From Paramoeba atlantica (lineage: Eukaryota > Protista > Discosea), in NCBI GenBank assembly GCA_977017575.1, contig CDRNVI010000011.1, positions 249,308 through 313,307 on the forward strand: 64,000 nt of DNA, written 5' to 3'. The position numbers and the translations under genes were made by a program. Shown piece by piece: positions 10,811 through 64,000 of this stretch (the stretch's first letter is position 1; the number at the start of each line of letters is the position of its first letter). Under the pieces are notes generated by a model. That model worked only from the letters and a program-made list of their open reading frames with translations, was not told the DNA's origin and ran no database searches.

Positions 10811-11338
10811 AATTTTTTTTTTCAGTTTTGGACTACCGGAGCTCCTTTTATATTTTTTTCTTCTATTGTATTACTGCGTTTCTCTTTATATTTTCACTGT
10901 TTTTGTTGACTTTTTTTTCAATAATCGAGGGTAGAGCGGTAGTTATACAACCACCGCAATAAGCAACGCTCATATTGGACTGCGAGTTCACTTTTATGAA
11001 CTCTTCTCTTGGCAAATGATATTAATACTATTTTTGCGAGACCTACGACAAAAATTCAATGTTTTTCACAAACTCTCCAGCTTTCCCAGTGTTTTAAGCC
11101 GTTTTGAGTGCCTTACCAGTATCGGTTGGCTGGGTATCTCATCGAAAAGGCTCAATTTCGGGAGCAGCAAGTGGAACACGGGAGCAGCAAGAGGAACTAA
11201 CCGCTGAATGTTTTTCGGTGTTTCGGGCTTTCTTTCACTTTTTCGTGCCCTTTATCGCAAATGTAAATAATAAGTGTAAAACACACGTAATATTTACAAA
11301 CACAGTTATTCTTTGCATGCTCGTATTATTTACATGTG

Positions 11339-12505
11339 CTGCCCCCCCCTATTTACTATTGAGTGCTCAACCCCCCCTATTTAGTGTTGAATTTTGGGTT
11401 CGGTGCGTATAGGCGCCGCGAAGCGGCGCTTGATTTTTTTTCCATAACGCTTTTTTTCTTATCTTTGCTTGTTATTTGTGATTGTTTACTCTCCCTCTCA
11501 TTCATTTTTACAAATAAATTTATAATTTATAGCAAAAATGAAAATTTAAATTTATGTTTATAAAAATCAATGAGAAAGCTTCCCAAGGATACTGATTTTT
11601 ACATCGACTTTTTACATCAGTTAAGAAGTTTTAGTTCAGTTCCGGTAAGTAAACATAGAGTAAGTAATGAAAATGCGTCGAGAGAAGCGCTCTTCCTAAC
11701 AACAAATTTATCTAAAAAAATTAACTACTGGTGGTAAATAAATTTACGAAGGCTTTTACAAAACAAAGAGGTGATCAGCACTTTCAGGGGAAATTCCTCT
11801 TCATTTTCTTCTGCTGCATCAAGAACCGGTACCACTGTAAGCAGTTCGCTCGCCCGGCGAATCGCTTCAAGGATGTTTTCTGGCTTATTTAGACTTTCCG
11901 GCGAAATTCCGACCTTACTCCACGCTTGAACATTGGCATGCCTCTGCCGATTATCATTAAGGTGGGCGTACGTTTTGATAATACTGTCAAGAAGCTGTGC
12001 TTTGCTTATTTTTGCTCCGATCGACCCAGTGTCACCGATTCGCTTTCCCTCAGTGTATTGACTCTGACAGTATTTCAGTAAGGCCATGGTTAGGTAGTCT
12101 AATAGTTTGGTTTCAAACGGTTAAAGAAACCCACATCACAAGGCTGAAGTCTTCATGTGCACTTTGCTGGAATGTATACAATTCGCAACCATGAAAAAGT
12201 GTCTTCGTTGCGCGCGATAAGTACAAAGCGCGTGGTATGTACGGAGCAGCAATCCAAGAGAAGAATCAAGGCAGGTTTTTGTTCAATTTGTAAAATATGT
12301 CCCCCCACAGGGCTTTCATACAAATGCCCCACAGCGTTCATAAAGTTGTATCCCCAACTGAGTGAAAAAAATACTATACTCATGGTTTTGAAAACAATAC
12401 GCCGCGAAGCGGCGCGCTTTTTTTTGAGAGGAGGAGATTTCTTACCCCCCCTATTTAGTGTTGAATTTTTCTGAATTTCACTCAACACTAAATAGGGGGG
12501 GACAG
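11339..12505 (-). mobile_element. Internally deleted pogo-like DNA transposon
   Basis: TIR CTG(T)CCCCCCCTATTTA at both ends (right end followed by TA, left preceded by TG). ORF 11725-12087 resembles a DDE_1 C-terminus (ISKAQLLDSIIKTYAHL..VQAWSKVGI). Confidence 0.55.
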
Positions 12506-12664
12506 TAAATAATAACTGTGAGAGGGATTTACTAGCTTAGAATTCTGCAAAGTAGAGAGCTGATTACAACCCGCACTGCTTTGTATCAGAGTAGAATTTC
12601 CTATAACATAACGTAAATATCCTCTCTTATGCGCACTCCTTAGTTTCTTGGTTATTTTTATTCA

Positions 12665-48192: not shown

Positions 48193-49419
48193 TCACGTCC
48201 TCTGAAGCTTTTCATCAACTTCTCGAAGTTTTCTCCTAAGAACGTCTTCAGAATCGTATTTTAAAACTTCAACTTTCCTATCGTCAAGTGCCTCACCGTA
48301 CCTATTTTGACGAGTAAACCGTGTTCCGGTAGAGAACAATTTCTTTTCCTTCGAACGTACGTACGTTCCTGATATATCTCTTCCTGAATTTTCAACGGCC
48401 TTTTGAAGTCTTTGCTGATGTTTCACCCAATCGCTATCACTTGGATGTTTAGTTTCTTTTCCTCCAGTGGGGTGCAGAATGACACCCAATTCGTTTTCAG
48501 AGATAACGATTTGCATAGCGCTGTGACCTACGCCAACCTCTGCGGTTTTTATTTTAATCAAATCTAAAAACTCACGTATCTTGCTCACTGCGCTTGGAGG
48601 GGAAAGAAATTTTGCACAAACAATGCGTACTTGCTTTCGCTTCGAAAGATCATCACGTATTCTCTGAGATCGCCACACCAAATCGTTGTGGGCTATGACA
48701 TCCCGGATGCTGTATTCCACGGGCTTTCCTTGTGATTTGATTATATTTCCAGAGGGAGAATTTCCAGTTGTCAAGTGATTGTCAATTTGTTTTAAAGCAC
48801 GGCGAACTTCATTTCGAATTTTACAATACCCAACGCCTTGATTTTCACCCAGCATAACCACATCTTGATCGCGTGACCTAGCATATACAATCGCGTCTTG
48901 AATCGAAAACTTCCGTTTGTCTGCATCGGGTTTAATGTCTTTCCCATCTGGAGTCTCTACTGAAGTGATAACTACCCTCTCGCAAGGAATATACTCATTA
49001 ATCGGTGTTTTACGAAAATACTCGCGAAGAGCGCTTAACGCAGCTCGATTATTTTTCTGATCCGACGGAAGAATATTGCTGATCATTTGCTCATATTGCG
49101 AAGGACTTGGAATCATTTTTGCTCTTCTTTGCATCTCGTGCTGCACTTGTAAGTCATTCAGAACGCCTTGCGAGAAATCAACTTCCTCAACATGCTCATC
49201 AGAATCGGTTTCTGTGCAATAACGACGAACAGCTGTGTAAATATGCAAATGCAGAATAGGGTAACGATTACTCCTTCTCATACTCAGAGAATTGGACTCG
49301 AAAAGTGGTATCTTCGGTCGAAATCCCCCGAGGGTATGACATGTTATGTTTGGTGCTTCTGAATATTGTGACATCATGTACACACACGGGAAAGTTGGTT
49401 TCGGACGTGCTCGAAACAT
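48193..49419 (-). CDS. Mitochondrial translation initiation factor 3-like protein (kinetoplastid type)
   Basis: Basic hydroxyl-rich presequence; IF3-N-like FSIQDAIVYARSRDQDVVMLG and IF3-C-like EYSIRDVIAHNDLVWRSQRIRDDLSKRKQVRI. Confidence 0.6.
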   Translation of the reverse strand: MFRARPKPTFPCVYMMSQYSEAPNITCHTLGGFRPKIPLFESNSLSMRRSNRYPILHLHIYTAVRRYCTETDSDEHVEEVDFSQGVLNDLQVQHEMQRRAKMIPSPSQYEQMISNILPSDQKNNRAALSALREYFRKTPINEYIPCERVVITSVETPDGKDIKPDADKRKFSIQDAIVYARSRDQDVVMLGENQGVGYCKIRNEVRRALKQIDNHLTTGNSPSGNIIKSQGKPVEYSIRDVIAHNDLVWRSQRIRDDLSKRKQVRIVCAKFLSPPSAVSKIREFLDLIKIKTAEVGVGHSAMQIVISENELGVILHPTGGKETKHPSDSDWVKHQQRLQKAVENSGRDISGTYVRSKEKKLFSTGTRFTRQNRYGEALDDRKVEVLKYDSEDVLRRKLREVDEKLQRT

Positions 49420-49589
49420 TTGTTTGATGTGCTAATAGGAAAAATATAGAGAGCTACTTGGAAAATGACAATATCCCTTTTATAAGATTATGACACTTAT
49501 TAGTGCTTTTTGTAAGCTATTTGTGCGCCTGTTTATGATAGTCCTCGCGTAGGGACTGCAAGCACTTCAATGAAAGAGAGGATTGCCTT

Positions 49590-54522: not shown

Positions 54523-56130
54523 TCATAATTTTTTTTCTCTTTTTCCAAAGTAAGCTCTCTTAAAATCGACCGCGTCACAAATGGCTGGAAAAATTGCTGC
54601 AACAAAAAGTAAGAATCGAGAAGCGTCGGTACTGTCACGAACATCCACACCAGCTTCCATGAGAAGAGTATTCATGTCAGAATAAATAGTTTCCTCATTC
54701 TCCGGAAGTAGGGAAAAACTTTGGATCTGCTGTGTTACATGTGAACTCAATTGATCGCTTCGGAAGATGGCGAGTGCTAGTCGTTGACATGCATCACGTA
54801 GAATAAATTTAGCGCCGAAACCGACCCCGGAAAGTGCAGATGATGTGAGCATGGCAATCTCCTCAAAGAATGGCGTTGAATTGGTTGAGGTTGATCGGAT
54901 ACTAAAAGATACGTCTTCGATGTAACCAGAACGAACGTGAAAAGATGTTTTTTCTATCCCACGATTATGTAATATCTTCTGCCAAAGAGAGTCTTCCCTT
55001 TGACCCTTCAAATTCAGTTTACTACATAAGGAAACTTGGAACACAGCTCCTGCACCCCGAATCCATTCCCAAGAGCCCAACTCTTTTATTCGATGGTGTA
55101 TATCAGCGCATGAATGTTCCCCAGAATCCACTTTTTGAATTTCTCCTTGTACATTCTGTGTCTTGCAATTTGTTTTAAGTGCTGTGAAAAGGTTCTTCCC
55201 TGGAGCAACATGGTCGTATACATCATAGGCGCAGTAACTTCCATTCGACCCGTATTCCGTCCAAAAGGCTTCCTGTACGAGTTCACTGGTCAAGAGAAAG
55301 AGATCGGAGTGGGGCGTGCAGTCTAAAGAATTCCCAGAAGCCTGAACCAGATTGGTGACTGAGCTTCGGACAGAGGGAGATCCCTTGGACTGCACCTCAC
55401 AAGAGGACTGATTTTGAAAGAGGGGCCGTAGGGATTCACTAACTTTTGCGAGGTCCGAGTGTACAAGGATGGTTCCGTGATGATAGGCCGCTCTGTGTAC
55501 AATGCGCATAGCACTACCAGTAATTTTCTTTCCCGCAACAAATAAATCGCTTCGTGGCGTGCTCGTTATATCAAGGCTTGACTCGCTCTTTCCGTTTTGT
55601 TTCAATTGTGTGTAAATTAACTTTTCAACTGCTTGGCGTACGACACCAAGGCTTCTCGCAGGATTGTATTTAGATCGAGAGGTAATAATACTAAAGCAAA
55701 GACACCCGGAATCGTGATACACACAACCACCACCGCTAATACGACGCAACACAAGTGGACTTGTACTGGCGCCATCGTTAAAATGCATTTCTTCTGGGTG
55801 CAAATGTCTTGTTTCCATCCAGGAAACCTGATTTCGACCCATGACAACGCACGGGTATCTACTGCGGTAGAGAAACAGAATAGATCCCAAAGAATCTACT
55901 CTAGGGTTGGTGTCGCAAACTCCGTAGACTGTCGGAAACAGCCGGAGCAACTGCTCTTCAAGAGCGAAATGAACGGTCGGATGCAGTCCTTGGCAATCGT
56001 CCTTGACGTAGGCTGTGTCCAGGCATCGAAGAACACAATTACGCCCACTGGCTATGTGATGAGAGACATCGGCAAGGCAAGCCTCTAAATTTTGAGCTAA
56101 TCCAGCGCTACTTAATGCAACAATTGTCAT
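54523..56130 (-). CDS. Lipoate-protein ligase A / lipoyltransferase
   Basis: HFALEEQL, VVMGRNQ, RRISGGGCVYHDSG, KKITGSA and YHHGTILV. Confidence 0.88.
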   Translation of the reverse strand: MTIVALSSAGLAQNLEACLADVSHHIASGRNCVLRCLDTAYVKDDCQGLHPTVHFALEEQLLRLFPTVYGVCDTNPRVDSLGSILFLYRSRYPCVVMGRNQVSWMETRHLHPEEMHFNDGASTSPLVLRRISGGGCVYHDSGCLCFSIITSRSKYNPARSLGVVRQAVEKLIYTQLKQNGKSESSLDITSTPRSDLFVAGKKITGSAMRIVHRAAYHHGTILVHSDLAKVSESLRPLFQNQSSCEVQSKGSPSVRSSVTNLVQASGNSLDCTPHSDLFLLTSELVQEAFWTEYGSNGSYCAYDVYDHVAPGKNLFTALKTNCKTQNVQGEIQKVDSGEHSCADIHHRIKELGSWEWIRGAGAVFQVSLCSKLNLKGQREDSLWQKILHNRGIEKTSFHVRSGYIEDVSFSIRSTSTNSTPFFEEIAMLTSSALSGVGFGAKFILRDACQRLALAIFRSDQLSSHVTQQIQSFSLLPENEETIYSDMNTLLMEAGVDVRDSTDASRFLLFVAAIFPAICDAVDFKRAYFGKREKKL

Positions 56131-56359
56131 ACATAGTTGTATGTTAAAAAATCATTGATCTATCAATTTTACAGAATCTGTAAACATTTTACAGAATCTC
56201 TCAGATGTAATTTTTTTTAAATGTATTAAAAAATATAAAAAATTAAGTTCACGTAGTTGCCAACAAGAGCAAAAAAATAAAATAAATAAACCATTGAAAA
56301 CGGGATGTTTATATTAAACATTGTTTATTAACATATTATAAACTTTGTAATTATACATA

Positions 56360-57103
56360 CAGGGGTGAAAACTTCCATCTGGGGGGGTCTAAAATTTGCA
56401 AAACTTTTTCAATTTCGGAAAATAATACCGCATTCGAGAGCTTTCGCAGAGTTGCATGTCTTTGCACTGGTAGCTTTTGACGTATCAAATTAGAACTCCA
56501 AATACCGAATAGGCCAAAAAAGCAAATTATCACTTAAGGAATAATAAAAAATCTCAGATATTTTTAGGAAACATTATTTTAAAACCACTGTCGCATCCAC
56601 AATATGCACCCTTCTTTTCTACGATGATTCTACAACGTTTTCTGAAGTTTTTAAACTTATTATCAAACTAATCTTTGTCTTTTGCCTGAAGTTTATCGTA
56701 AAAAACACGAATCATTCCACCCAGAGTTTCACAGTTCCCTAGTGAACCCAAACACTTTGGTAAGTCCGGGAATAAGACTGTGTTTTCTCGAAGTCGGCCA
56801 CAAGCAGTAATCTTTGGTGTTCTTTAATCTTCCCTGGCAAGCATAAGAACGGGCGTTCGAAACACCATGAGAATTCCTTGAGCGAACTCGCTTTTGGGGC
56901 GTAAAATGGGGCAAAAATGAAAAATTGCCATATTTTCACAAGGAAAAAAACATGTTTTTTTCTCATCGGGTTAAATCTTTCAAGCCGAGCGTTCCGAATA
57001 CGCCAAAGACATACAACTCTGCGAGACCTCCCCAATGCGCTATTATTTTCCAAAATTGGACAATTTTTACAAAATTTAGACCCTCCCCAGATGGAAGTTT
57101 TCA
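56360..57103. mobile_element. Longer member of the 43768 MITE family
   Basis: TA|CAGGGGTGAAAACTTCCATCTGGGGGGGTCTAAA left end. The inverted right end is truncated next to a TTCAGAACAATCCGGC tandem. Confidence 0.65.
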
Positions 57104-59653
57104 GAACAATCCGGCGAATTTCAGAACAATCCGGCCCTTTCAGAACAATCCGGCGAATAGTTCTTATGTGACTAGGAAAGTGCAAGAGACGTTGTGAAGA
57201 AGATGCTCAGTATTGCAACATTGAACGTGACCACTTCAAAGCCGAAGAAGAGAGAGAGAAGAAAAGTAGTTTTTTAAGGACGCAGCTAATCAACGACGAT
57301 ACGGCTTGCATAAATTATGGGATGATTTTTCATAGTCGTTGCGCACAGACATACGCAGTAGTACACATGAGGGGCTGCGGGTCGCGAGGTTTCACCGAGG
57401 TTTCGCATGCACAATAATTTTGTAGGGGTGATCACCGGAAAATATTGATTATCTATGCCTTATTTTAGCGAAGTGTTCTTTTGATTTATGTACACATCCA
57501 TGTATACTGTACCCCAGTTATCAGTCACCCCTCCCCGCCCCCTATTTATCAGCCACTATTTGGCACTTCGTTTTTTTTTCGTCGACCACCCCCCCTAGTT
57601 ATCTGTCACATTTTAAAAATAGTAATTTTAAAAATCCAGGCATAAAGGGGCGAGGGAGATACCAAGCAACAGACACACCCTGGAGTAAGTGGCTTGAAAG
57701 TTACAATAGCCCACTTACAAGGTTGTAAGTTACAATTTTAACTTACAGCCTTGTAAGTAAATTTCAGGACATGTAAGTAAGAAATAATTCCTTAACATTT
57801 AGCAAATTGGGTAAATTGGTGGCGCATTCAAGAGCAACGAAAGGCATGTTCACATAAAATGGGGCAATGATGATGGATATGACACCTATTTTCAATATTC
57901 AGGACAAAACAAGAAGACGCATATGTCTTTGTGTAAGACGTTAGTAAGCACAAGTAAGCAAGTTAGTGAAGTAGTATGTGAATTAATGCAACGGCTATCC
58001 TTTTTCATTCGTTTATGTACTCGCTGGTTGCCTGGCTAAGTTAAAGGAGTGCTCTGTTCGATCATGCAGGAAGTGATTTCAATAATAATGTAACGGTCTA
58101 GTAAAAGTATATAAAGATATATTGTAAAAAACAACGTCGTGCGATCGCTTTTCTTTCATGGTACACGTATTTTAAGATAAAAAACGTGAATTCGAATACC
58201 TAGAGAGGGTTTACGTAACACTAAGTAAAACCACAGAAAAACTTAGATACGACGTATAAAAAACGTTGCTGTGGACGGGAAAAGCTCGGGAAGGTGAGGT
58301 GCGCTATACCCCAACACTGTCGTAGAATGCCCCTGACCTCCGGCCACGTTCGTGTCCGCCAAAATATATTGCAATAACAATCTTGAAAAGAGATATCATG
58401 CTGTATTCGGAACAGAACAATAATCGCATAGTATTTAATTTAAGGACTTATTCCTCGACGTCAAAGTCTTTATATATCCCCCACAAAAAACTTAGTAAGG
58501 TTTCCTCTGATGAACATTTGGGTAGCAATCATGTCGGAATCTAAGCATGACTGTCTGGGGTCATACTTCCACCCCATTATGGATAAAAGAGAACCGCAAG
58601 CAGTTACAATGGGAGGCACCAAGTAGTGTCTAGCTGCTTCGTATATAGCAGGGAACTTATCGCAACCAAGTCTCCGACCATTTCCACGCAGTGGTATGTT
58701 GCTCAGGGTGCCACTCATAATTTTGGCATGTTATGTAGTCTGACCACTCCCCGGCGCTGATTCGAAATAAGGGCTCACCGCTATGGAAAAGATCGTTTGC
58801 TTCGTTTGGAAAAGATCGTTTGGACAACCTGATTGTCCGAGGTATGTTCGTTAACTTGATCATCCAGTGCCGTACATCTGTTCTTATGTTGGGTATATGT
58901 TTGAATACACTTGCTGTGAAATATGGTAAAACACAGGTTGCACACTGCGTGACGCCTCTGATTCGCAGGGTCTTTTAAATATGTGCCGGCTTCGGATCTA
59001 CGATCCAATTCCTTTTTACATGATTTTGATTTAACGTCATCGGTAAACGAGCAAAGCTCATAGGAGAAAAAATTGTGCAGCTTCCCATGTTTTAGAGGGT
59101 CTTTCACGTTTCCGATGTGTGTTTTAGACTTCGTAGTGTTCCTGGTTGGGGTGAGCTCCGAGGACAGTGCAGCTTGAGACCGCGACTCAAGCAACGAGCC
59201 GGAGAGATCCTGAGAAATTAGTCTCCGCGCCTGAGAAGCACTTGGTGTTGCCGGTGACGCTTTTGAATTTGCCATTTCCTGCGATTCAGTTTGGTTGTCG
59301 GACGACCGCTTAGTTCTGGAACGTGTACTTGCCTTGCCTGGGCTCATAAGGATAAGGTATAACAGTTGAAGACTTGACAAAAAACTAGTTTATTGCAATA
59401 GCATCTTTGAATCAGGGTTCGCAGAAACTATAATATAGTAAAATATAGTTTTTTTCATTGAATATAGTTACTATATAGTACTATATTTACTATATTTTAC
59501 TATAAAACTATAAGAAAACTATAAAGTTTTTTTCACTTTACAAGTGATATTTTTTGAGTCCTCTCCGCTTGTGAAGGACATACACACGCCTCTACATGCG
59601 TTCTTACACGCTTACATACGTATGATATGACAAGAAATTCTGAAAAAAATGTA

Positions 59654-59820
59654 ACCCAAGCTAAAGTGGACGAGGAAGGTTCTAAAAGCACATTTAAACC
59701 ACCATAAAAATGGAAGGGTATGTCCCTTAAAGATTCCTTTACAAACCGGGAGATATCATTCTATTTTTGTGGTGGTTTAAAGGTGCTTTTAGAACCTCCC
59801 TCGTCCACTTTATCCTGGGT
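59654..59820. mobile_element. Fold-back MITE in a palindromic ATG-TA-CAT target
   Basis: TA|ACCCAAGCTAAAGTGGACGAGG...CCTCGTCCACTTTATCCTGGGT|TA. Confidence 0.7.
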
Positions 59821-60733
59821 TACATAGCTATCGAAACATGCTCCCTCTTCCCCGCGATTCCATCACCGCCGAAAAATATCATCAACTAGTGTGTCATCTC
59901 CTCGGAAATGGCAATGAAACGCATGCGAAAGGAGTGACGATAGGAAGTACAAACTCTCCACTCGACAACACACCGCGTAATTTATTCAGACTCATATGAT
60001 TGTATTTATTCCTTCATATGATTGTATTTATTCAAACTCATAGAATTGTGAGCAGCAGTTATTCAGTCCCAAGACATAACGTCGGTGGCTCCAGCCAAAG
60101 CGCGGCGACAGCGATGCAGTGAGAAGATGTTCGGGACGCAAGATTCGCACAAGGCAATCTGTCAAGGCCACGCGATGGGACTGGGGTACGTCCCCTCCTG
60201 ACACAAGTTACGTTCAACCGCTTGTTTACTTCCCTCCGTGTACAGCAGTTCAATAAAATAATCTTTGCAGAAACTACCCCTCGTAACTTTAATTTCGGGC
60301 ATCAATTTTCGGGTTTAAAAATAAGAAAAATCGTACACAAATGAATTCGCCGTGTATTTATGGCGTGTTGGTGAGCTTCGGAGTGCCTAAAATGTGAAAC
60401 AAAAAAATATAGTTTTTTATAGTTTTCGAAAAAAGTTTATAGTAACTACAGTCAGCAAAAAAACCGTTCGAATGTTTCGGTTTTTTTTTCTTTTGTATAG
60501 AGCTATTGATTAAATATCACCGTTGCGCTGATAATGTGTGCTAGTAGTGTAGGCATGAGTGTCACCTAATAGTACCCGTAGATAGTTCACCTCAGTTCGT
60601 TCTACCAAAGAAATAAGAATGAATATAAAAAAGTTTAGCATTCGAAAGGTTTTTTTGCTACCTATTATAGAGAAAATCTTGTCCCAAAAAATAGATGAAA
60701 CGTAATCGCCCAAGAGAGATTATGCCCCTAAAA

Positions 60734-61744
60734 TTAGTATTTAGTATTCCCCCCACGAGCCTTCAGCACTGCCTTCATACGGGCAGGCATACTGTCCACC
60801 TGGGCACGACATACTGAGGGTGGTATGTTCGCCCATTCCATTTTTACCCTCTCCCACAACTCTCGGACCCCGCTTGGTGGATCATCGTGCGCTGCAAGGC
60901 GCCGCTTGAGTTCCCCCCAAACGTTTTCGATTGGATTTAAGTCAGGGGACTGCGGGGGCCACCGCATGACTTCAAACCCGGTACCCCGGAGGTGCCGTTG
61001 CGCACAATGGCTTGTGTGCTTGGGGTCATTATCTTGTTGGAAGATGACCATTGGGGGGTCTAGACCCATAGTTTCGATGGAGGGGGCAAGATTCTCTTCA
61101 AGAATCTCGACGTACTGTGTGGCGTTCAGGTTCCCTTGAACTAGACGCACATGCCCCACACCGCTTCGGGACATGCACGCCCAAATCATGATGTGCCCCC
61201 CTCCGTACTTTACCGTGGGAATTACCCCTTTTTCACCCAGTTCCTCCCCCGGGGTCCCCCATGTCCAAAGACTTCCCCCCGTTTCAAAGCGCGAGATCTT
61301 CGTCTCGTCCGACCATACAACTGGAGCCCAGTCGTGCACTGTCCAGTGCTCATGGGCCGTGGCAAAGTCCATCCGAAGCTTGCGATGGCGCTTGGACAGG
61401 TAGGGCTTGCGGACACGCTTTCTACCTTTGTGTCCGAAGCGGTGCATCGAAACTCGGATAGACTGAGGAACAACATCAGCAACGCCCTCGCGGCGCAGCT
61501 GAGATGATACCTCTCGCGCAGAATTTCCGGAGAACACAAGTCGTCGCACACGGCGTGTGCACGGCTCGGAAAGCTTTCGAGGGCGTCCACCCTGCATCCT
61601 GAGAGTATCAGGCCTTTCTTTTTTTAAGATCATAGAAATTGTTGAGATACTTAAATTTACAGTATCAGAGATGGACCTCATAGACACACCGCTGTCGTAG
61701 AGCTCTGCAATTTGTTTCTTTACGTAACGTGGTGTGGGCCTCAT
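60734..61744 (-). CDS. Tc1 DD34E transposase, copy 1 (336 aa)
   Basis: GRPRKL, WSDETK, QQDNDPKH and WPPQSPDLNPIENVW; 34 residues between the second D and the E. Confidence 0.95.
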   Translation of the reverse strand: MRPTPRYVKKQIAELYDSGVSMRSISDTVNLSISTISMILKKERPDTLRMQGGRPRKLSEPCTRRVRRLVFSGNSAREVSSQLRREGVADVVPQSIRVSMHRFGHKGRKRVRKPYLSKRHRKLRMDFATAHEHWTVHDWAPVVWSDETKISRFETGGSLWTWGTPGEELGEKGVIPTVKYGGGHIMIWACMSRSGVGHVRLVQGNLNATQYVEILEENLAPSIETMGLDPPMVIFQQDNDPKHTSHCAQRHLRGTGFEVMRWPPQSPDLNPIENVWGELKRRLAAHDDPPSGVRELWERVKMEWANIPPSVCRAQVDSMPARMKAVLKARGGNTKY

Positions 61745-61841
61745 AGAAAATAAGAATTTTAGGTAAGAAGAATTTTAGGTTATAGAGTTTATCTTACACT
61801 ATTACATTGTTTATCTTACACTGTTACATTTTGCACTCTAT

Positions 61842-62852
61842 ATGAGGCCCACACCACGTTACGTAAAGAAACAAATTGCAGAGCTCTACGACAGCGGTGT
61901 GTCTATGAGGTCCATCTCTGATACTGTAAATTTAAGTATCTCAACAATTTCTATGATCTTAAAAAAAGAAAGGCCTGATACTCTCAGGATGCAGGGTGGA
62001 CGCCCTCGAAAGCTTTCCGAGCCGTGCACACGCCGTGTGCGACGACTTGTGTTCTCCGGAAATTCTGCGCGAGAGGTATCATCTCAGCTGCGCCGCGAGG
62101 GCGTTGCTGATGTTGTTCCTCAGTCTATCCGAGTTTCGATGCACCGCTTCGGACACAAAGGTAGAAAGCGTGTCCGCAAGCCCTACCTGTCCAAGCGCCA
62201 TCGCAAGCTTCGGATGGACTTTGCCACGGCCCATGAGCACTGGACAGTGCACGACTGGGCTCCAGTTGTATGGTCGGACGAGACGAAGATCTCGCGCTTT
62301 GAAACGGGGGGAAGTCTTTGGACATGGGGGACCCCGGGGGAGGAACTGGGTGAAAAAGGGGTAATTCCCACGGTAAAGTACGGAGGGGGGCACATCATGA
62401 TTTGGGCGTGCATGTCCCGAAGCGGTGTGGGGCATGTGCGTCTAGTTCAAGGGAACCTGAACGCCACACAGTACGTCGAGATTCTTGAAGAGAATCTTGC
62501 CCCCTCCATCGAAACTATGGGTCTAGACCCCCCAATGGTCATCTTCCAACAAGATAATGACCCCAAGCACACAAGCCATTGTGCGCAACGGCACCTCCGG
62601 GGTACCGGGTTTGAAGTCATGCGGTGGCCCCCGCAGTCCCCTGACTTAAATCCAATCGAAAACGTTTGGGGGGAACTCAAGCGGCGCCTTGCAGCGCACG
62701 ATGATCCACCAAGCGGGGTCCGAGAGTTGTGGGAGAGGGTAAAAATGGAATGGGCGAACATACCACCCTCAGTATGTCGTGCCCAGGTGGACAGTATGCC
62801 TGCCCGTATGAAGGCAGTGCTGAAGGCTCGTGGGGGGAATACTAAATACTAA
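61842..62852 (+). CDS. Tc1 DD34E transposase, copy 2 (336 aa, identical translation)
   Basis: Same motifs; translation identical to copy 1 in the ORF track. Confidence 0.95.
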   Translation: MRPTPRYVKKQIAELYDSGVSMRSISDTVNLSISTISMILKKERPDTLRMQGGRPRKLSEPCTRRVRRLVFSGNSAREVSSQLRREGVADVVPQSIRVSMHRFGHKGRKRVRKPYLSKRHRKLRMDFATAHEHWTVHDWAPVVWSDETKISRFETGGSLWTWGTPGEELGEKGVIPTVKYGGGHIMIWACMSRSGVGHVRLVQGNLNATQYVEILEENLAPSIETMGLDPPMVIFQQDNDPKHTSHCAQRHLRGTGFEVMRWPPQSPDLNPIENVWGELKRRLAAHDDPPSGVRELWERVKMEWANIPPSVCRAQVDSMPARMKAVLKARGGNTKY

Positions 62853-64000
62853 TTTTAGGGGCATAATCTCTCTTGGGCGATTACGTTTCATCTATTTTTT
62901 GGGACAAGATTTTCTCTATAATAGGTAGCAAAAAAACCTTTCGAATGCTAAACTTTTTTATATTCATTCTTATTTCTTTGGTAGAACGAACTGAGGTGAA
63001 CTATCTACGGGTACTATTAGGTGACACTCATGCCTACACTACTAGCACACATTATCAGCGCAACGGTGATATTTAATCAATAGCTCTATACAAAAGAAAA
63101 AAAACCGAAACATTCGAACGGTTTTTTTGCTGACTGTATATAGTACTATATTGATAGTTTTATAGTTTCTGCGAACCCTGTCTTTGATTACTTTCATCTA
63201 CACTAAGTTTAATGAAACAAAAAAAATACATTATACTACATTGTAGGTTGTAAGTTGTAACTTACAAGCCACTTACTCCGGGGTGTGAACAGATGTAGCA
63301 GATTCCCACTGAAAAGAAGTCGTATCTCCTGCACGAGAAATGTATACCTATGCACTTGCTAGCTCGGAGTCAACCTCGTGCAGGGAAATACGTTTTCTTT
63401 TCAGTGGGAATCTGCTACATCTGTTGCTTGGTATCTCCCTCGCCCCTTTATGCCTGGATTATACAAAAACACTTTCGTCGTATCAATCAGAAAATTCGTG
63501 GACCTCATGGCGGCTACGGTTGACAAAACAATGCCAATCTTCTTCTAAAAAGTGGCTTCTGAAGGCTTCTGAAAAAATGGCCATCGGGCCATCCCCTGGA
63601 AAAGTGGCCAGCTGGCCACTCCCGGAAAAGTGGCTAGCTGACTCTTTTTTCACGTCTTCTGACCCTTTTGAAAAATAAAAGATGCGGTGCAGATTGCATT
63701 GGTTTTCATGTATGGATCATTGGGCGTGAATCATCAGTATGAATATGCCACATACATTAATGTAGATCTCTTAAAAATTTCAATGAAGAGAACCAAAGCC
63801 TGTGTAGTCGTGGTTGTGGCGTTGTTGAAACGATTTTTGAAAGACGTTAAAATGAATTTATCCAGCACTGAGTATTGCTGTATTTCTATTCTGTTTGCTG
63901 AGTTGTTGGACGACAAACACTTGAGAATGGCTTTGAGGGATTTTAGCTGAGTTTCGCGAGGTTTCACCGAGGTTTCAACAAGGTTTCACCGAAGTTTCAC

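Follow-up and report, generated by a model that had tools for sequence, protein, structure and literature searches.

A palindromic Tc1 transposon with a complete transposase gene in each terminal inverted repeat

Structure and family of the element

The stretch of DNA analysed here (the window) comprises 64,000 nucleotides of contig CDRNVI010000011.1 in the Paramoeba atlantica assembly GCA_977017575.1 (positions 249,308 to 313,307). Near its right edge, at 60449-63136, lies a unit of 2,688 bp with TA on either side. An earlier reading made from the sequence alone (the sequence-only reading) had described it as a giant palindromic Tc1 transposon with two intact, divergent transposase genes, and this description holds: identical open reading frames (ORFs) of 336 amino acids (aa) lie in arms of 1,297 and 1,296 nt, which take up 2,593 of the 2,688 nt. 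When one arm was compared by BLAST with the reverse complement of the other, no mismatches and one gap were found, the gap being the T9/A8 homopolymer run already named as the sole difference. Three overlapping spurious ORFs are also mirrored between the arms. Each arm ends exactly one base before the ATG of its transposase gene, and the non-palindromic spacer between them contains a tandem duplication as well as a further short duplication that was spotted by eye. The coordinates of all features are collected in Table 1.

The element reads TA/CAGT at its left end and ACTG/TA at its right end (the slash marks the boundary), as had been stated. Both ends are of the 3' type, identical and outward-facing, and there is neither a 5'-type end nor an inner end. 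A 21-nt motif just inside each terminus is repeated in inverted orientation further in, where the subterminal copy begins approximately 215 nt from each end (measured from its CAGT-equivalent position). The motif was matched four times in the window against 0.01 matches expected by chance, never near the spacer, which agrees with the proposal of an element with two 3' ends, no 5' end and a terminal inverted repeat (TIR) that contains the gene. In its terminal position the motif is likely to be a transposase binding site. The flanks were said not to be mirrored, and in the window copy there is indeed no mirroring past the short AT-rich palindromic target. A search of Rfam returned no RNA family anywhere in the window.

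Table 1. Features of the palindromic element (window coordinates) and of single-gene elements on other contigs
Feature	Position	Strand	Basis
Left TA target copy	60447..60448	.	Only one TA in the empty-site contigs
Left arm, 1,297 nt: end module, 3' untranslated region (UTR) and whole transposase gene	60449..61745	-	Arm-versus-arm BLAST
Terminal 21-nt motif, just inside the CAGT end	60454..60474	+	Motif scan; kept at the ends of all family copies
Subterminal 21-nt motif, inverted relative to the terminal one, without CAGT	60639..60659	-	Motif scan
Transposase gene copy 1, 336 aa, DD34E	60734..61744	-	ORF, Pfam, catalytic residues
Unique spacer between both start codons, 95 nt	61746..61840	.	Recurs in L001-L004
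22-nt tandem duplication in the spacer	61787..61830	+	2 copies, 95% matches
Right arm, 1,296 nt	61841..63136	+	Arm-versus-arm BLAST
Transposase gene copy 2, identical 336-aa protein	61842..62852	+	ORF, Pfam, catalytic residues
Subterminal inverted 21-nt motif, right arm	62927..62947	+	Motif scan, inverted-repeat pair
Terminal 21-nt motif, right end	63111..63131	-	Motif scan
Right TA target copy	63137..63138	.	Sequence ends; single TA in empty site
Single-gene Tc1/mariner elements of other lineages	L002:8088-9657; L004:7348-8686, 11257-12618

The 336-aa protein matches the Pfam families DDE_3 and HTH_Tnp_Tc3_2, the latter with 32.3 bits against a cut-off of 31.5; matches to HTH_SB and HTH_38 are weaker. 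Its catalytic triad consists of D146, D238 and E273, with 34 residues between the second aspartate and the glutamate (DD34E). These three residues are invariant in an alignment of 12 relatives, and the protein has every other residue that is invariant in the same alignment. The catalytic half aligns with the Sleeping Beauty transposase SB100X (E = 1e-56), and the N terminus is a paired-type helix-turn-helix (HTH), with a GRPR-like linker (GGRPRK) in the stretch from residue 41. An exact-protein look-up of the 336-aa product found no record, because the only stored contig of the locus starts inside the spacer, so that the gene call is longer.

By its predicted enzyme, its target and its ends, the element is a member of the Tc1 (DD34E) group of the IS630/Tc1/mariner superfamily. 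It combines the DD34E triad with an HTH and GRPR, duplicates TA (seen at the window copy and at the further copies L002, L001 and L005 described below) and has TIRs that start with CAGT and carry putative binding motifs. The canonical layout of one gene between much shorter TIRs is absent, as there are two genes, each inside a 1.3-kb TIR. This layout is a typical feature of the Tc1 family and not the basis of its classification.

Further copies, an empty site and a second family

For comparison, a second assembly of the same organism (ENA ERZ24900291) and contigs assembled from four public runs of one study were used; the run contigs are all short. The sequence-only reading had raised the prospect of further copies with the same spacer and other TA flanks, and these were found. 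A second full copy (L002, 4608-7296) is 99.6% identical to the window copy and has the same spacer, unrelated flanks and TA/CAGT...ACTG/TA termini. In addition, the ENA assembly holds five deletion or truncation derivatives of this family, here termed F1 (L001, L003, L004, L088 and L089). L001 has TA on both sides at a third site and has lost 806 bp from within one arm. L003 and L004 each retain one arm, the spacer and a remnant of the opposite arm (17 nt in L003, 283 nt in L004); across the derivatives with a spacer, the second-arm remnants measure 17, 132+348 or 283 nt. L088 and L089 are truncated single arms. The 95-nt spacer is common to L001-L004, which lie at different loci, and differs by 0-2 substitutions in L001-L003.

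Contigs from the four runs cross both inner junctions of the palindrome, from arm to spacer (61716-61805) and from spacer to arm (61776-61870), which provides part of the junction-spanning evidence that the sequence-only reading had looked for in reads. The runs also contain the unoccupied target. In all four, the left flank continues up to the TA at 60447-60448 and then into the first nine bases of the right flank, and in one run, approached from the right, the last 15 bases of the left flank precede the right flank. These contigs carry a single TA between the two flanks, which confirms that the unit occupies one duplicated TA. The empty site as rebuilt from the flanks had been said to resemble a repeat at 59464-59490, and by eye approximately 23 of 24 positions do match; the flank letters of the empty-site contigs fit the window locus and not this look-alike. 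The longest such contig matches 349 nt of the left flank with two single-nucleotide polymorphisms (SNPs). As the runs carry the exact empty site of the window locus, the insertion is probably polymorphic for presence and absence, between haplotypes or strains. A long paralogous repeat is a less likely source of these contigs; no second copy of the left flank was found in approximately 190 kb of this genome.

The palindrome is confirmed as genuine, being neither an assembly fold-back nor a one-off, because of the second full copy in L002, the derivatives that are decayed palindromes, the junction-crossing contigs and the exact empty site. L002, L001 and the empty site also indicate that the palindrome has moved as a single unit.

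The same architecture is present in a second family, F2, whose protein has 52% aa identity to that of F1. The F2 copy L005 has 1,306-nt arms that are 100% complementary, a 55-nt spacer and TA/CAGTAAC ends. Its arms also end one base before the ATG, and the distance of the subterminal inverted motif from the end is 217 nt. L006, a further F2 copy, has an internal deletion and the spacer seen in L005. The 95-nt and 55-nt spacers show no demonstrable homology (score 30; shuffled sequences, mean 20, standard deviation 4). Synonymous sites are saturated between F1 and F2, and no ratio of nonsynonymous to synonymous substitution rates (dN/dS) can be computed. Both F2 copies are bracketed, outside their TA, by near-identical direct repeats of approximately 18-20 bp (L005:4620-4640/7306-7325; L006:2515-2537/4488-4510); this probably reflects insertion into tandem-repeat host sequence and not a long target duplication.

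A maximum-likelihood tree was built from 118 transposases, comprising F1, F2, 112 metagenomic relatives and two distant Tc1 proteins of the same genome as outgroups, with proteins outside the range of 320-375 aa left out. F1 and F2 formed a clade with a support of 100 in the approximate likelihood-ratio test (SH-aLRT). Since the two families form one clade among the metagenomic relatives, the simplest reading of the tree is that the mirror-image build arose once, long ago. The sequence-only reading had spoken of a young, possibly mobile architecture. This stands in that the window copy is young and copies occur at several TA sites, but the architecture itself is old, because F2 has the same build at 52% aa identity.

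Tc1 elements were said to have normally one ORF between shorter TIRs, and this agrees with what is seen among relatives. Most of 80 soil-metagenome loci with relatives at 35-52% identity (L008-L087) have one ORF between TIRs of typically ~215-240 bp (L013, L025, L031, L032 and several others), and a second inverted gene copy was found in none of the 80. In several relatives, a terminal motif of approximately 20 nt recurs inverted about 185 nt inside, so each of these TIRs is itself a small fold-back. F1 and F2 retain this end module of approximately 215 bp. The other Tc1 lineages in the same genome are conventional single-gene elements with 23-33% aa identity to F1 and TIRs of ~35-115 bp (Table 1). 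A conventional single-ORF progenitor of F1, which the sequence-only reading had proposed to look for, was absent from the reachable DNA of the organism; the ordinary form was met only in the metagenomic relatives and in the distant lineages of the same genome. Three candidates for copies with a conventional left end were rejected: L003, which had been considered as a single-gene copy, is a truncated palindrome with the spacer and the remnant of its lost arm, and L088 and L089 are the truncated single arms mentioned above.

Some further observations on the copies and their surroundings may be useful. A contig of 1,633 nt from run X1 matches 61776-62010 and has, just before 61776, a Tc1-like end (...TACAGTCAGGAATTACC..., of the CAGTCAGG type). 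Either a family copy whose left side differs or an insertion of another element into the spacer may account for it; its sequence before 61776 matched none of the sequences compared. At L003:7290-7320 and L004:7320-7345, a second short terminus fragment (...GCTGACTG/TA) lies just outside the right end of the decayed copy; it may be what an earlier copy left behind or the footprint of an excision at that place. The ENA contig L007, which covers the window locus, differs from the window by 26 SNPs at 49.5-55.3 kb and by a 164-bp indel near window 49393-49558, which suggests a second haplotype. The surroundings of the window copy are gene-poor and contain many short AT-rich palindromic repeats that resemble MITEs (miniature inverted-repeat transposable elements), such as those at 59434-59504, 59649-59825 and 63288-63425. 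One AT-rich repeat (window 59428-59543) has an 82% copy at L004 3461-3569.

Mode of movement, origin and competing explanations

We consider the unit, at a probability of about 0.85, to be an autonomous cut-and-paste Tc1 (DD34E) transposon of a kinetoplastid genome, whose TIRs have grown to 1.3 kb around the whole gene. By the established mechanism of Tc1/mariner elements, Tc1 transposases recognise terminal binding sites only, and both ends of any Tc1 element are alike there. Because the enzyme sees only these sites, the palindromic body should not matter for cutting and pasting. The transposase would bind the terminal 21-nt motifs, identical at the two ends, with the inverted subterminal copies as probable auxiliary sites. 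It would then cut at TA/CAGT on both sides and paste the whole palindrome into a new TA, with the mirrored body as mere cargo.

The ancestor may have been a conventional element with TIRs of approximately 215 bp. In a single old event, an inverted copy of the gene together with the right TIR would have taken the place of the left TIR and of some of the 5' leader. A break in this leader could have been mended by fold-back repair, or the template could have been switched during repair of the gap left by excision. The two right ends would then have served as the transposon, and later transposition and a split would have given rise to the two families. L088 retains a possible trace of such repair. 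At its truncation point (L088:3914-3965), its first bases are duplicated in inverted orientation over 39 nt, with 6 nt between the two copies, and run X2 shows this fold-back junction as a loose end at window 62010. Fold-back repair therefore appears to operate on these elements. For a MITE with both sides from the right end of its Tc1/mariner parent, template switching has been proposed (PMC3814204). Both the L088 duplication and this MITE mechanism make a fold-back or template-switch origin plausible.

If the build predates the split of F1 and F2, arms left to diverge freely would differ strongly today; since those of a copy are 99.8-100% alike, the arms must be homogenised. Gene conversion is the standard explanation for inverted repeats that stay alike. 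At least six substitutions that distinguish F1 copies (alignment columns 85, 118, 127, 1046, 1185 and 1243) sit in both arms of the copy that carries them, and non-mirrored differences are few: the window copy has one indel, L002 three substitutions. Only L001 departs from this, with a 3% difference in its outer part, possibly the result of recombination. The arms are thus probably kept alike by gene conversion.

Several other explanations of the locus have been weighed. Perfect palindromes are a classic product of chimeric reads, and a fold-back long read or an assembler error could have made a false palindrome out of one ordinary element, as might be suspected from the ENA contig L007, which is identical to window 55310-61756 and ends 11 nt into the spacer, its positions 1-12 corresponding to window 61745-61756. 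Such an artefact would have to produce the same non-palindromic 95-nt spacer in L001-L004 at different loci, be crossed at both arm/spacer junctions by contigs from four runs, be bordered by a right flank that completes the left one into an empty site present in the runs, have arms that differ at three positions in L002, and recur in F2 with a different spacer; its probability is close to nil. A one-off local inverted duplication of a resident element, itself immobile, is also highly improbable. L088 shows that fold-back events do affect these elements, but full or near-full palindromic copies lie at no fewer than three unrelated sites with TA on both sides, an exact empty site exists and the build is common to two families. 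Two inverted complete genes with the outer ends in use formally correspond to the layout of a compound transposon, and two Tc1 elements might have inserted head-to-head 95 nt apart and moved by their outer ends in the manner of Tn5 or Tn10. We give this equally little credence, as there are no inner ends, the 21-nt motif is confined to the two termini and the two subterminal sites, the arms stop one nucleotide before the ATG in both families, and a single arm is never bracketed by a pair of TA.

It is less far-fetched, though still unlikely, that the palindrome is real and was formerly mobile but is now inert or is moved in trans by another Tc1, the intact ORFs merely reflecting youth. Most copies found are damaged, and from established RNA interference biology a read-through transcript would be expected to fold into a 1.3-kb hairpin, a potential trigger of silencing. 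On the other hand, both ORFs are intact and have all residues that are invariant across the 12 relatives, copies are 99.6% alike, the site appears polymorphic, and the other Tc1 lineages of the genome, at 23-33% identity and with different ends, are unlikely helpers. Some points also weigh against an autonomous palindromic transposon. At least one assembler failed to traverse the palindrome, as L007 demonstrates. No single read or contig that was inspected covers flank, arm, spacer, arm and flank, the run data being short contigs, and the run pieces listed show the empty site and not the filled junction of the window locus. The full copies are all from a single organism and probably from the data of one project, and gene conversion is deduced from few copies.

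Host, known systems and wider meaning

The genes flanking the element are long ORFs without introns. Among named sequences, a DHFR-TS gene from a contig of the same assembly is best matched by those of the prokinetoplastid PhM-4, Perkinsela and trypanosomatids, and for a lipoate ligase gene in the window Perkinsela is the only named match. On these grounds, the host genome is that of a kinetoplastid.

This host offers a tentative explanation for the persistence of the build, which we regard as possible but doubtful: the mirror-image arrangement may be an adaptation to kinetoplastid gene expression. In long, one-directional transcription units without gene-specific promoters, one of two divergent gene copies would always be in sense orientation, whichever way the element is inserted. 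Each spacer half would supply a pyrimidine-rich leader for the adjacent ATG, and each arm would serve as a repair and conversion template for the other, slowing mutational decay. On the sense strand of the adjacent gene, the spacer halves of F1 have pyrimidine fractions of 0.64 and 0.68, and all four halves of F1 and F2 fall between 0.64 and 0.74; approximately 9% of background windows reach 0.64. These values resemble those of the 50 nt upstream of several host genes. They are weak evidence for the idea that a sense copy is available either way. The first AG after each pyrimidine tract lies within the ORF, a position at odds with a simple trans-splicing model.

Compared with conventional Tc1 elements, such as those with the Sleeping Beauty type of inverted repeat/direct repeat (IR/DR) ends and the ~1.6-kb soil-metagenome relatives, the element has the same DD34E triad, paired HTH with GRPR, TA duplication and CAGT termini, and also the ~215-bp end module, in which an outer binding motif is followed by an inner one. 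It differs in that conventional elements have one gene and TIRs of tens to a few hundred bp, whereas here the inverted repeat continues through the 3' UTR and the gene. Sleeping Beauty has two binding sites per TIR in direct orientation; in the present clade, the inner and outer motifs face in opposite directions.

Fold-back or hairpin MITEs of the Tc1/mariner type include PALTA1_CE, CeleTc2, CeleTc5, Tc6 and "Goblin" in Aedes (PMC3814204). As in these, a single inverted repeat makes up almost the whole element, the right side of the parent has given rise to both halves, and template switching during gap repair is proposed as the origin. Fold-back MITEs are short, non-coding and non-autonomous, whereas each half of the present element has an intact and apparently functional 336-aa transposase gene. 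Galileo (P superfamily) and FB elements likewise have TIRs of approximately 1 kb, look like fold-backs and tend to vary in structure. In Galileo, internally repetitive non-coding TIRs flank a single central transposase gene (PMC4168063, PMC3688188). The present element belongs to another superfamily, and its TIRs are the gene. Tn5 and Tn10 consist of two inverted transposase-encoding modules and use their outer ends for movement. The F1 element likewise has two inverted transposase modules with the outer ends in use; in Tn5 and Tn10, however, each insertion sequence is complete, has two ends, moves alone and flanks cargo together with its partner, whereas the F1 modules have no inner ends and enclose only the 95-nt spacer.

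Our literature searches brought up no account of a Tc1/mariner element in which each TIR contains a full transposase gene; the closest known counterparts are the non-coding fold-back MITEs. As of 2021, Merlin was the only DNA transposon reported in kinetoplastids, where it was described as the first (PMC8101967), and in a 2026 preprint on free-living kinetoplastid genomes the words transposon, Tc1 and mariner are absent. The present elements add Tc1 to the transposons of kinetoplastids.

Perfect palindromes of 2.7 kb break assemblies, as happened in L007, and are candidate hotspots for hairpins and rearrangement. The copies suggest that a Tc1 transposase can move an element with gene-containing TIRs of 1.3 kb, and that an autonomous fold-back form can persist and diversify. 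This form links ordinary Tc1 elements with the puzzling fold-back MITEs of their superfamily, for which template switching is so far only an inferred origin. If the adaptation to host gene expression is real, it would explain why the build has lasted through a divergence of two families to 52% aa identity, and its independence of orientation would be a clear case of a host transcription system shaping the architecture of a transposon.

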